Shown piece by piece: positions 14,354-49,438 of a stretch of DNA of 64,000 nt (position 1 is the first letter of the stretch; every line of letters starts with the position of its first letter). A program made the position numbers and the translations under genes. The stretch lies in the NCBI GenBank assembly GCA_004431415.1, contig QPMI01000701.1:3474-67473 (forward strand). The letters are read 5' to 3'. Under the pieces are notes generated by a model. The model was not told the origin of the DNA, did no database searches, and saw only the letters and a list, made by a program, of their open reading frames with translations. The DNA is from Cyanophora paradoxa CCMP329 (Eukaryota; Plantae; Glaucophyta).

Positions 14354-14386
<33 letters not shown>
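14354..14386. repeat. Poly-G homopolymer (~33 nt)
   Basis: Run of G visible directly; it lies in the 3' region of the LCIB-like gene. Confidence 0.85.
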
Positions 14387-14438: not shown

Positions 14439-15943
14439 TCAGAGGTCGTGGCGGGCGCCGGCGACGACGGCGTAGGCGAGCATGGGGTACACGAGGTCGA
14501 CGCTGTGCGGCCCGTGCACCTCCACCCCCGTCAGCACCGCGTAGTCGCACGCCCCCCGCCCCCCGCCGTCGACGCCGCGATCAGGTGCTCCAGCAGCTCG
14601 CCCTGGGCCTCGGCGGCGGCGCGGGTGATCTCGTCGAGGGCGGGGCGGGGGCGCCGGGGGGCGGGGCCCGAGGCGCTCGAAGACGAGCTGGGCGAGCAGC
14701 GACTCCTCGACGTCCTCGAGGTCCAGCGCCGGCCGCTCCTGGCCCCGCCCCGCCCCGCCTCGGTGCCCCGCCCCGACGCCCACGCGCCGCGGGCGCGCAC
14801 GTTCATGAGGCCCTGCGCGTAGCGGGCCTGGATGGCGCAGAGGGCGCCGCAGGCGTGCGAGGGGCGGCAGCGGCCGGCGCGGGTGCAGGCGCCCACGGTG
14901 CCGTCCTCGCCCACCGCGACGTGCAGGAACGCGAAGAAGACGTACCGCTCCCGCCCGTCCCCCGCCTGCGCCCCGCCCCCGCCCCTCAGCCACCGTCGGG
15001 GGGCGAGTGGAGGGCGGGGGGCGGGGGGGCGGGCCAGCGGGGAGTGCCCCTCGGCGGCGGCGAAGGCGGTGATGCCGCCGGAGAGCAGCCCGCCGATGCC
15101 CGCGAGGCCCGACAGGTCGAACTGCAAACGCCCACGCCTCACCCCCCGCGCCCCAGGGAGGCCCGCCCCCGGGGGCCGCGGCGGGGAGGGCGCACGGCGC
15201 CGGCCCCGCCGGGGGTTGTCCACGCCTCCTCGATCTTGCGGAAGAGGGGCTGGCAGAGCTCGTCGCGGCACAGGCAGATCACGGGTATGGACGTCTGCGA
15301 GGCCCGTCGGGCGAGGCGCCGGCGCAGGGCGGGGCGCGGCGTGCAGGGCGCGGGGCGGGCGGACCTGCCTGCAGAATCCGAAGGGGGCGAGCCGACGGAC
15401 CGAGTTGCGCACAAACTCGTCGCGGGTCACGCAGCCGGGGTACAGCTCCCTCACGCGCTCCTCAAACGCCCTGCTTGCACCCCGGCTCGCTCCCAGGGGG
15501 CGGGGGGCGGGGGGCGGGGGGGCAGGGGGCGGGGAGTGGGCGGCGCGCGCGCACGGGATCGTGAGCAACTGGGGGCGAACGACAGAGAGCAGATGCTGGA
15601 TGGGATTCGAACTGAAGGCTCTCTTGACGGCGCGCACCGCCGCCTCCCGCGCCTGCCCCGGCAGCTGCTCGCGCCGCTCCGGCGGAATAGCCACGCAGGC
15701 GCACGATAACTCGATCAGCGGCGCCTGGGGTCGAAGCACGGCTTCCTGGGTCCCAGCGAAGAAAGCTCTCCGTCCGCCTCGGTGCTCTAGCGAGTTCGAT
15801 GCCCTGTCCGGGGAGTGGCGGCCCGGTCGCATGTGCTGCGTACGCGTACACGCTGCGCTAGTCGTGTCTGATGCACGCTGCGCTAGCGCTGAAGAGCTCC
15901 ATTGCGGCGCGCTGCAGCTACAGCTCGCTGAAAAGGCTTCCAT
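14439..15943 (-). CDS. LCIB: LCIB/LCIC-family (theta-type carbonic anhydrase) protein, paralogue 1, predicted stromal
   Basis: Transit-like N-terminus (MEAFSAS..RRAFFAG). LYPG..F, ICLCRDE, FDLSGLAG, AAEGHSP, RYVFFAFLHVAVGEDG, SHACGAL, DYAVLTGVEVHGP; Cys/His/Cys metal ligands are intact. Confidence 0.9.
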
Positions 15944-43760: not shown

Positions 43761-44185
43761 CCCGCCCCGAGGGCCCCAGCTCCCCGGCGTCCCTCTCCTC
43801 CCGCCATCGTGCTCGGATCTTGTGTTCGTTTTCGTCACATGAACTGTACTTGATTCGTGGCCCCTCGACTTGTCTGCTGTACACCTCAAGCCGGCGCCAT
43901 GCCCGCCGCCCCTCTCTCGGCCACGAGCCAGCTGGAGCAAACGGGGCGGGAATAATGAAGTACGCATTCGATTCACATAGTCTTACAACAACAGCAGCAT
44001 CATGTCTGCACAGGCTCTCAAAATTGGTCATAAATACGCTTCATAACTAAAACTAGGGCAAGTGTTATGCAGGCACGCCCGGATCCCGTCTACCCAAGCT
44101 GCCGAGGGAGGAGCCTAGAGGCAACATGAAACTGAACTGCACAGGAGAGCGCGGCGGCGCGCGCCGGCCGGCCGCGAGGAGAGGT

Positions 44186-45670
44186 TTACGCGAGGGTCTT
44201 CTTCTCGCCGTTGACGACGGCGTAGGCGCCGGTGGGGAAGATGTAGTCCGAGCCGCCGGGGCCGTGGATCTGGATGCCGGTGAAGACGGCGTAGTCGCAG
44301 TTCTTGCCCTTGGTCGACTTCTCGATGTAGCCCTGGAGGTACTCGGCCTGGGCCTCGGCGGCGGCCTGGGTGATCTCGGGGAGGCTCTTCTCGCCGCCGG
44401 CGCCGAGCTTGTCGAAGACGAGCTGGGCGAGGAGCGACTCCTCGAGGTCGCCGAAGTCAACCTCGGGGCGCTTGTCCATCTTGCCGTTCTTGTACCGGCC
44501 CTGGATCGCCACCAGCGCGCCGCACGCGTTGGACGGCGCAGCCCGGCCCACGCGGTTGCACGCCCCGATCGTCCCGTCCTCGCCGATGGCGATGTGCGGC
44601 GCCGCAATGAACACTGCGCGAGGCGGCTCAGCGACGCCGGCGGCTGCGAGGAGGGGCGCGCCAGGGGCACTGCGCACCGTACTTCTCCTTCTTGTCATCG
44701 CCGGTCTGGGGGGAGTGCGCCTCCGCCGCGCCGAACGCCGTCACACCCGCCGAAAGCATGCCGCCCATGCCCGCCAGGCCGGAGAGGTCGAACTGACCAG
44801 GGCGGAGAGTCAGCGCACAGTGCAGAGAGGCGCGGCGAGGGCACAGCGGGGCAGGCTCACCGCGCCGACGGCACCCTGGGCCCACGCGCCCTCGATCTTG
44901 CGGAAGAGGGGCTGGCAGAGCTCATCGCGGCACAGGCAGATGGCGGGGATGACGTTCTGCAGGGGGTAAGGGCCGGAACGGGGCGGGGCGGGGCGAGCGA
45001 GGGGCAGGGGCACCTTGCCGTTGAAGCCGAGGGGGTTCAGCTTCTTCTGGGTCTCCTTGATGAACGCCTCGCCGGTCACCGCGCCGGGGTAGAGCGCCTC
45101 GAGCTGCTCAGTGAAGGCCTTGGTCGCGGTGGCGGCGCTGCGCGGCGGGGCCGATCAGCGGGGAAGGCCGGCGCCAGGGCGGGGCGGGGCGGGGCGCACG
45201 CGAAGGCGGGCTTGGTCTTGACGGAGAGGAGGGCCTGGAGGGAGACGGCGGCCGCGGCGCCCATGACGGTACGGCGGCTGGTGGTCATCTTCTTCTCCTC
45301 GGCGACGGGCTGCGCGCGCCGGCCATCATTAGCCATCGGTCCAGCAGCGAGGCGACGCGAGGCGAGGCTAGGACCGTCCGCTAGGCTCTAGCAAGGCTAC
45401 GAGAGCAACGTACGCGCTCGCCTACGTGCGCGCGCGGTCGGCGGGGCGGCGAACCTTCTCGGCGGAGGCGGAGACCGAGAAGGAGGTGGAGGGGGCGGCG
45501 CGGGCGGCCTTCTTGGCGACGGCATCGCCGAAGAACGCCTTGTTCTGGACGCGCGCGGCGCAGCCGCAGGCCGGGCCATGGCCGCAGGGGGCCTTCACGC
45601 AGACGGCCGAGGCGGTGCTGACGGCCTGGCTGGCGCCGACGACGGGGGCGACGGTGGCGAACGCGTTCAT
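44186..45670 (-). CDS. LCIB: LCIB/LCIC-family (theta-type carbonic anhydrase) protein, paralogue 2, with bipartite transit + Tat signal
   Basis: MNAF.. transit peptide with KAFFG, then TSRRTVMGAAAAVSLQALLSVKTKPAFA. Catalytic domain ICLCRDE, FDLSGLAG, AEAHSP, PHIAIGEDG, SNACGAL, DYAVFTGIQIHGP. Confidence 0.92.
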
Positions 45671-46241
45671 GGTGCTGGCTGGGAGGGAGGCGGGAGGGCG
45701 GCGAACTTACTACACGACTGTCCGCCGGTTCTTCGCAGCTGCCGGGTCAACCTCGGTCCCCGTTGCGAACTGGCCCGCTGTTATAGGGTTCAAAAAAGTA
45801 ATAGTGGGAGAAATTTTATTAAAGAATGTCATTTCGAGGATGATGGAGCGATAAAGAGCTGCTGGGATAATGATAGTCATGATCACGGGGTGCCTCAAGG
45901 GGGCACCCCTACGGATCCCCTACGGCCACCTGCACCCGATCGAGCGCGCGCGGCCGTACGCGTTCGCGTACGCGTGTACGTGTCACAGTGTCCCTGCGCG
46001 GCCGGCGCGGCAGCCGCGGCTATACGCGCTAGCTATAGCTGTAGCTTGCGGTGCACGTGCGGCCCATATGGCAAGAGTCCCGACTTCATCGATATCCAAG
46101 ATTCCCAGATAGACGTTCTCCAGAGGCCGGAAGCGGTGGGCGGGGTCTCGAGCGAAGTCCTGCTATTCACTGAACCTACACTGTGACAGCTAGTCTAGAT
46201 CTGCCTGGGTCCTGCGTAAGCTAGCGGGCGGCGGCGGGGCC

Positions 46242-49025: not shown

Positions 49026-49247
49026 TTGCTCTAAATTTAGCCGGGCACCCCTTCAGCTTGTTGGGCCCCGGCAATGGGCCGGCATGCGCATCATCATGAT
49101 ATCGATCAGCGGCAGGCTGCAGCCCAGCATGCCGGCCGCGGGCTCTAGCTCCTTGATCGAGTCGTCCGCTTCCGGCTAAAGATTCAATGGCTGTGGTCAT
49201 GGGTCGAATGCATGAGAAGATCTCTGAAATGCGAATGCGAACTAGAC

Positions 49248-49398
49248 TCTGCGTGAAGGCCCCCTGCGGCCACGGCCCGGCCTGCAGCTGCGCCGCGCGC
49301 GTCCAGAACAAGGCGTTCTTCGGCGATGCCGTCGCCAAGAAGGCCGCCCGCGCCGCCCCCTCCACCTCCTTCTCGGTCTTCGCCTCCGCCGAGAAGGT

Positions 49399-49402
<4 letters not shown>
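49248..49402 (+). pseudogene. Inverted near-identical copy of the transit-peptide exon of LCIB paralogue 2
   Basis: Matches the reverse complement of ~45445-45603 (CVKAPCGHGPAC..FFGDAVAKK..SAEK|gt) with about 4 substitutions; followed by a (CCG)11 run. Confidence 0.85.

Positions 49403-49438
<36 letters not shown>

Follow-up and report, generated by a model that had tools for sequence, protein, structure and literature searches.

In Chlamydomonas reinhardtii, the zinc carbonic anhydrase (CA) CAH3 carries a bipartite leader, in which a transit peptide is followed by a twin-arginine motif, a hydrophobic core, and an A-x-A (A-K-A) site (PMC10814762). The enzyme is proposed to free CO2 from bicarbonate in the acidic thylakoid lumen, and its location and function have both been shown experimentally. 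Lumenal CAs of another class, the theta-CAs of the diatoms Phaeodactylum (Pt43233) and Thalassiosira, are essential to the CO2-concentrating mechanism (CCM) and belong to the LCIB_C_CA family. The same family includes LCIB and LCIC of Chlamydomonas, which are stromal, take up a position at the pyrenoid periphery in low CO2, and have no lumen signal. To our knowledge, a lumenal CA is central to every pyrenoid mechanism so far understood, while the molecular parts of the glaucophyte CCM are essentially unknown. Here, we describe a gene of the glaucophyte Cyanophora paradoxa CCMP329, located at positions 44186–45670 on the minus strand of a 64,000-nucleotide stretch of contig QPMI01000701.1 (hereafter the window), whose product P0001 belongs to the LCIB/theta-CA family and has a two-part leader with every sequence hallmark of a twin-arginine translocation (Tat) thylakoid-transfer signal, placed directly ahead of the folded domain.

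This arrangement resembles each of the described systems in part. CAH3 has the same order of leader elements, but it is an alpha-class enzyme unrelated to theta-CAs, and it works in pyrenoid-crossing thylakoid tubules that are absent in glaucophytes. The diatom theta-CAs share the family and the lumenal location, yet they reside in a secondary red plastid, use another multi-part leader, and fall in a separate clade of the family. Chlamydomonas LCIB and LCIC share the family, the fold (TM 0.84–0.87), the Cys-Arg-Asp-Glu motif, and the His and Cys ligand positions, and differ in being stromal. The gene model and its LCIB annotation were already public. Neither the RR signal of P0001 nor a glaucophyte lumenal CA is described in the literature searched, outside which lie most subscription journals and the main glaucophyte reviews.

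A predicted transfer signal encoded by an exon of its own

The gene runs from an ATG at 45670–45668 to a TAA stop at 44188–44186, and its six exons total 1089 nt (362 codons), separated by five introns that all have GT..AG ends. To delimit these parts, contigs of four public runs (X1, X5, and X9, transcript; X15, DNA) were aligned to 43900–45900 of the window (2001 letters), and each exon was translated:

43949–45762 (−), extent of the mRNA (X1 record 1, 1418 nt, with five gaps that equal the introns)
45762–45671 and 44185–43949 (−), 5′ and 3′ untranslated regions (UTRs), from transcript contigs
45455–45670 (−), exon 1, residues 1–72, predicted transit peptide (per-exon translation)
45310–45454 (−), intron 1, 145 nt, GT..AG; joint 45309|45455 in X1, X5, and X9, missing in the DNA run X15
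45200–45309 (−), exon 2, 110 nt, residues 73–109, Tat-type signal (translation and transcripts)
45271–45276 (−), twin-arginine codons of R84 and R85, translating as RR
45220–45270 (−), h-region TVMGAAAAVSLQALLSV, 17 uncharged residues (translation)
45138–45199 (−), intron 2, 62 nt, GT..AG, splitting the last Ala codon of A-F-A (gene model and X1 record)
45014–45137 (−), exon 3, residues 109 (third base) to 150, with the predicted mature start AATATK and the first CA-domain helix
44861–44956 (−), exon 4, residues 151–182, with the C159-R-D-E motif at 44932–44921
44678–44792 (−), exon 5, residues 183–221 (first base)
44186–44613 (−), exon 6, residues 221–362 and the stop, with H227 at 44596–44594 and C251 at 44524–44522

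Exon 1 begins MNAF, with Phe at position 4, and closes TSFSVSASAEK. A Phe near the N-terminus is a hallmark of cyanelle transit peptides (PMC4510345), and the FSVSASA end resembles the corresponding stretches of the Cyanophora Rieske protein (TTFSVSCSA) and PsbU (AAFTVVAQA) in Table S2 of Köhler 2015. With its Phe start, a body rich in hydroxylated residues and Ala, and an end of the F-x-V-x-A type, exon 1 can be identified from its composition as a glaucophyte muroplast transit peptide, in line with the Phe-type leader proposed in a first-pass annotation of this DNA. Exon 2 reads PVAEEKKMTTSRRTVMG, then AAAAVSLQALLSV, then KTKPAF and the split Ala codon, i.e., the stretch PVAEEKKMTTS, the pair R84 R85, T-V-M-G within a 17-residue uncharged, Ala/Gly-rich core, K-T-K, and P-A-F-A. 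The sequence T-S-R-R-T-V-M-G occupies residues 82–89 behind a polar n-region, with V and M at +2/+3 after the RR; the core reaches a best 12-residue hydropathy of 1.82, and the c-region is basic (KTK), with Pro at −4 and an A-x-A site. The first-pass annotation had noted TSRRTVMG, a hydrophobic stretch, and AFA directly before the catalytic domain, all of which read as claimed; it had also predicted a mature N-terminus at ATATK, which has to be corrected to AATATK, as the residue after AFA is Ala. Since the signal (residues 73–109) ends where the fold begins (from about 110–118), the three modules of the protein, i.e., transit peptide, transfer signal, and passenger, match the exon borders.

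Exon 2 is part of the mRNA. Transcript contigs of X1, X5, and X9, which come from three studies, match the exon borders of the model exactly: junctions 45455|45309, 45014|44956, and 44678|44613 are present in all three runs, and 44861|44792 in X1 and X5. The DNA run X15 is collinear with the genome across the gene. A repeat at 45168–45203, which covers junction 45200|45137, was masked by the mapper; this junction is nevertheless supported because the contig numbering fits the model, positions 415–418 of X1 record 1 leaving exactly four letters for 45203–45200 and adjoining the piece that ends at 45137. The junctions on both sides of exon 2 are thus carried by contigs of three studies, which settles the presence of the exon in the transcript, a point the first-pass annotation had left to RNA sequencing, and the gene ends and RR position (45271–45276) that it gave likewise agree with the sequence. 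The start codon is unambiguous, since the 5′ UTR has no ATG and holds an in-frame TAG TAA upstream of it, and exon 2 is needed for the reading frame because exon 1 ends in phase 0 and exon 3 begins in phase 2. Skipping of exon 2 or use of an alternative start was considered and ruled out, as skipping would cause a frameshift and all transcript contigs hold exons 1 and 2. One low-depth contig of X5 (7.5 versus ~500) joins 44449 to 44882 with GC..GC ends, and probably reflects either misassembly or rare mis-splicing.

Ala and Arg are frequent in this genome of 73% G+C, and we therefore also scanned all 128,000 residues of the window's six frames for similar motifs. A strict Tat-like pattern (RR with a hydrophobic residue at +2, at least 13 residues that carry no charge and average ≥1.3 in hydropathy, then AxA) had a single match, exon 2, and a relaxed form had three, counts that are only indicative because the pattern was defined after the site had been seen. 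Comparison with the exported proteins of the organism itself is more telling. Among the Cyanophora precursors in Supplementary Table S2 of Köhler et al. 2015 (PMC4510345), the PsbU leader reads AEEKK-G-RR-EFVAAAG...SPAAFA followed by Y, and the PsbP-like leader S-RR-QAFAAA...TPAFA followed by L, while no RR is present in the Sec-type signals of cytochrome c6 and PsbO. The leader of P0001 groups with the RR class, with which it shares the twin arginine, an Ala/Gly-rich core, and a P/A-A-F-A end, and it further resembles PsbU in its Phe-type transit peptide and AEEKK stretch. The passengers differ, those of PsbU and PsbP-like being small extrinsic proteins of photosystem II (PSII) that are lost when cyanelles are washed with Triton (ratios 0.26 and 0.10; see below). 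PMC2600650 cites indirect evidence that cyanelle thylakoids have a Tat translocase.

The passenger is an LCIB-family domain

Protein libraries were searched exon by exon and then with the public protein P0001, found by an exhaustive search with exon 6, over which it is 100% identical. This protein (362 residues), named Cyanophora paradoxa tig00021795_g23537.t1, equals the per-exon translations over its full sequence. It scores 157.7 bits with the Pfam profile PF18599 (LCIB_C_CA; cut-off 25), with residues 128–353 covering profile positions 1–222 of 223, and exon 6 alone matches the profile with an E of 4e-26. Against the structures of Chlamydomonas LCIB/LCIC (5k5w and 5b5x), P0001 gives E of 4e-31 and 1e-29, in alignments that begin at residues 118–124. 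In the AlphaFold2 (AF2) model, pLDDT is 84–98 for residues 110–362 and <50 for residues 1–109, and the first helix of the domain spans residues 115–124. The best Foldseek matches of this model are 6kfs, 5k5w, 5b5y, and 5b5x, with target TM of 0.83–0.87, followed by beta-CAs. The gene product therefore belongs to the LCIB/theta-CA family and has the LCIB fold with its beta-CA-like core, an identity that the first-pass annotation had read from the letters alone and that profile, structure, and fold comparisons all bear out.

Residues C159, R160, D161, E162, H208, H227, R241, C251, and E278 are all present and invariant in alignments of 40 and 169 homologues, although the rows of these alignments were chosen by a C-[RK]-D-E pattern, so that the invariance of that motif is by construction. 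By homology with the LCIB structure, we take C159, H227, and C251 to be Cys-His-Cys zinc ligands. Bacterial homologues, of about 240 residues, start where the domain starts and have no leader. A bacterial signal peptide retained by inheritance, an origin prompted by the Met just before TTSRR, could be ruled out on these grounds.

Abundance and wash behavior in isolated cyanelles

Published proteomics offer an independent view of where the protein resides. Köhler et al. 2015 (PMC4510345) analyzed cyanelles isolated from cells grown at 5% CO2, with or without a wash in 1% Triton X-100 intended to strip off outer membrane and periplasm, and called depletion at a two-fold difference. P0001 is entry 53135_cds:10437 of that study, stored with its complete leader. 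Its amounts were 32.6, 42.9, and 44.0 in untreated cyanelles (mean 39.8) and 26.1, 19.0, and 21.6 in washed ones, for a normalised wash ratio of 0.84 and no ‘putative periplasm’ flag (PMC4510345). The following entries of the same dataset (PMC4510345) serve for comparison:

PsbO: amount 82.6, ratio 1.03, unflagged
PsbU: amount 55.3, ratio 0.26, flagged ‘putative periplasm’
Cytochrome c6: amount 18.2, ratio 0, flagged ‘putative periplasm’
PsbP-like: amount 4.7, ratio 0.10, flagged ‘putative periplasm’
Rieske: amount 17.5, ratio 1.0, unflagged
Beta-type CA (52891_cds:6752): amount 2.8, ratio 0, flagged ‘putative periplasm’
LCIB paralogue P0006: amount 8.4, ratio 1.34, unflagged

The P0001 protein is truly in cyanelles, at about half the amount of PsbO, and is by far the most abundant LCIB protein there even at high CO2. 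The Triton-depleted class includes PsbU, cytochrome c6, and PsbP-like, together with thioredoxin, a ferredoxin-like protein, FTR-alpha, and cytosolic contaminants, while large or complex-bound proteins of all compartments survive the wash. This suggests that the wash acts largely as a size filter through the wall and is not a clean marker of the periplasm, and, since the depleted class mixes lumen proteins with small stromal ones, it does not separate lumen from stroma. For a 27-kDa enzyme of a family that forms dimers and hexamers, retention would be expected in the lumen and in the stroma alike.

A candidate route to the lumen and its alternatives

The reading we favor, at slightly better than even confidence, is that of a Tat-delivered, lumen-facing theta-CA with a two-part leader; Tat dependence, cleavage, lumenal residence, activity, and a role in the CCM are what we infer from the combined observations. 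Exon 1 would direct Toc/Tic import through the muroplast envelope, the precursor would be cut near SASA|EK on reaching the stroma, and the theta-CA would fold and bind zinc there. Exon 2, now exposed, would then hand the folded enzyme to the thylakoid Tat translocase, and a lumenal signal peptidase would cleave after PAFA to yield a mature protein of ~27 kDa, with six or seven residues ahead of the first catalytic-domain helix. The theta-CA would turn bicarbonate into CO2 in the acidic lumen, and this CO2 would diffuse to the Rubisco body inside the concentric thylakoids, and stromal LCIB paralogues such as P0006 may recapture the CO2 that leaks. The first-pass annotation had likewise proposed a stromal and a lumenal partner, pairing P0001 with a neighboring paralogue at 14439–15943; P0006, which has a transit peptide and is present in cyanelles, fits better as the stromal member than this neighbor, for which the cyanelle proteome of Köhler 2015 has no entry under an LCIB annotation and whose sequence in the window shows a disturbed reading frame (see below).

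Several observations weigh against this route. The Tat profiles TIGR01409 and PF10518 have no match even at E 10, whether in the whole protein or in residues 79–140. Both profiles are short and describe mainly bacterial signals with an S-R-R-x-F-L-K consensus, so that we weigh this negative lightly, and two euglenid RR leaders of the same family (see below) are likewise unmatched by them. The Triton wash spares the theta-CA (0.84) and depletes PsbU (0.26), PsbP-like (0.10), and cytochrome c6 (0), which argues that the enzyme is not a small free lumen protein and is instead oligomeric, membrane-bound, or stromal; we regard this as mild evidence against the simplest lumenal form. The N-terminal data (TAILS) of Köhler 2015 include only an internal N-terminus for this protein, at residue 227, and none after AFA, and the enzyme is abundant at 5% CO2, which one would not expect if low CO2 induced it. 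No orthologue with the signal came from another glaucophyte in an exhaustive search of 1.84 billion representatives or in a word-index search, i.e., nothing nearer than the Cyanophora paralogues, and the LCIB proteins of Gloeochaete and Cyanoptyche are without it. Recombinant Chlamydomonas LCIB is inactive in vitro, according to a review, and membership of the LCIB family would for this reason not assure CA activity. Finally, the glaucophyte pyrenoid is naked and uncrossed by thylakoids (Price 2019), although thylakoids that merely envelop the pyrenoid are an accepted arrangement elsewhere.

Some of these observations are shared by the alternative in which the theta-CA is stromal, possibly around or in the Rubisco body like Chlamydomonas LCIB/LCIC, and the RR stretch is a non-functional or membrane-grazing linker. 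The characterised LCIB proteins of Archaeplastida are all stromal; P0001 is abundant at high CO2, survives the Triton wash as stromal proteins do while small soluble lumen proteins are lost, and leaves the Tat profiles unmatched, and a genome of 73% GC, rich in Ala and Arg, is one in which such a stretch could occur by composition. The retention is less telling than it appears, however, as oligomers excluded by the wall would be retained anyway and the depleted class includes the small stromal thioredoxin, ferredoxin-like protein, and FTR-alpha. Against a stromal enzyme also stand the single occurrence of the strict motif across the six frames of the window, its full set of four Tat hallmarks, its likeness to the Cyanophora PsbU and PsbP-like signals, its encoding by an exon of its own exactly between transit peptide and fold, and its absence from five paralogues. 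Taken together, we consider a stromal enzyme unlikely, though clearly worth keeping in view.

Two further alternatives keep the RR segment functional and change its outcome. It may be an uncleaved signal anchor like that of the Rieske protein, a known Tat-inserted protein of this kind, tethering the catalytic domain at the lumenal face of the thylakoid, and the wash ratio would suit this arrangement, membrane- and complex-bound proteins being retained (Rieske 1.0, PsbO 1.03). The core is, however, short (17 residues) and only moderately hydrophobic, containing Ser and Gln, and a good P-A-F-A site with Pro at −4 lies behind it; cleavage of PsbU and PsbP-like at AFA is itself assumed by analogy with PsbO only, whose N-terminus was measured at residue 85, after A-N-A. 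We see an anchor as an improbable outcome. The enzyme may otherwise be periplasmic, resembling the periplasmic CAs of cyanobacteria, as the first-pass annotation had allowed for: the Sec translocase is present in both the cyanelle envelope and the thylakoids, cytochrome c6 can be sorted to both compartments by one signal, and a dual location of Tat has been proposed as speculation (PMC2600650). This option loses ground with the ratio of 0.84, as a periplasmic protein should be depleted beyond the two-fold cut-off once the outer membrane and periplasm are washed off, and the putative-periplasm flag, with a ratio of 0, is carried by a different CA, the beta-type 52891_cds:6752. We regard a periplasmic theta-CA as highly improbable.

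Origin of the signal within the Cyanophora paralogues

At least six LCIB paralogues are present in Cyanophora. A tree of 80 domains places P0001 as sister of P0003 (support 99) within a five-protein Cyanophora clade (support 98), and the five other Cyanophora paralogues are all without an RR signal. The RR signal therefore arose as a separate exon, following duplication in a Cyanophora-specific clade of paralogues. Among ~75 homologues with N-terminal extensions, an RR and hydrophobic core before the domain were found only in P0001 and two euglenid proteins, P0128 (Euglena mutabilis) and its close relative P0096, in which S-R-R-D-L/M, a core, and A-L-A-A-E stand behind plastid leaders of the euglenid type. 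These two proteins group with green-algal LCIBs, and their RR signals are thus independent of that of P0001.

The sister paralogue lies in the same window:

14439–15943 (−), P0003, tig00021795_g23525, no RR signal before the domain (tree and N-terminal reading)

The first-pass annotation had given this neighbor a transit peptide and no Tat signal. The second part stands, while the MEAF start on which the first part depends would be used only if translation begins at 15943, and the public model of P0003 starts downstream of that position. Within segment 14560–14700 (−), a conserved helix, LDEITRAAAEAQ..., lies in another frame than its conserved flanks, and the public model misreads this segment as a Pro/Arg-rich stretch, with two compensating shifts inside G/C runs that could be assembly errors or genuine gene damage. 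About 50 nt past the P0003 stop at 14439, a run of ~33 uninterrupted G occupies 14354–14386 (+), i.e., poly-C on the gene strand. The remaining paralogues are diverse at their ends: P0006 has a MEAF transit peptide and a repeat-rich tail of Pro, Tyr, and Ser, P0007 ends KKSRACVIM, a CaaX-like box of the prenylation type, and P0002 and P0008 have no obvious plastid leader. From these termini, the LCIB family of Cyanophora seems to be spread over several compartments.

A partial copy of the leader is also found within the window:

49248–49417 (+), copy of the 3′ two-thirds of exon 1 and 21 nt of intron 1 (45603–45434), 171 nt, 96.5% identical

Located 4 kb from the gene on the opposite strand, this copy continues into a (GCC)n tract, and an in-frame upstream ATG at 49187 opens a GC-rich open reading frame of 314 codons with no recognisable content. 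One contig of the DNA run X15 departs from the gene at 45603 into the flank of this copy, which is a recent duplication of a fragment of the transit-peptide exon.

Implications for the glaucophyte CCM

At present, the P0001 theta-CA is the strongest candidate for the enzyme that releases CO2 in the glaucophyte CCM. We tentatively propose, as a possibility less likely than not, a pyrenoid-type CCM without crossing thylakoids, in which a constitutive theta-CA, at about one per two PsbO, would be bound lumenally to the concentric thylakoids (perhaps at PSII, as proposed for CAH3) and release CO2 inwards; in this scheme, lumen targeting of the LCIB family by newly acquired twin-arginine signals would have occurred at least three times, in glaucophytes, diatoms, and euglenids. 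The first-pass annotation had expected such an enzyme to bear on whether the glaucophyte central body works as a carboxysome or a pyrenoid. It would indeed add an enzyme to the pyrenoid model, but the question had already shifted toward the pyrenoid by other means, the carboxysome idea having been weakened on ultrastructural grounds (Price 2019), so that a lumenal theta-CA would supplement the pyrenoid model and not settle the question alone.

Arguments in this long debate have drawn chiefly on ultrastructure and on the lack of shell genes, and P0001 brings to it a concrete and abundant candidate. If the favored reading is true, P0001 would be the first lumen-targeted theta-CA of a primary plastid, and a mechanism based on a lumenal CA would prove workable where the thylakoids do no more than encircle the Rubisco body. 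The gene would then also be a further case of a single exon giving a duplicated gene an entire sorting signal.

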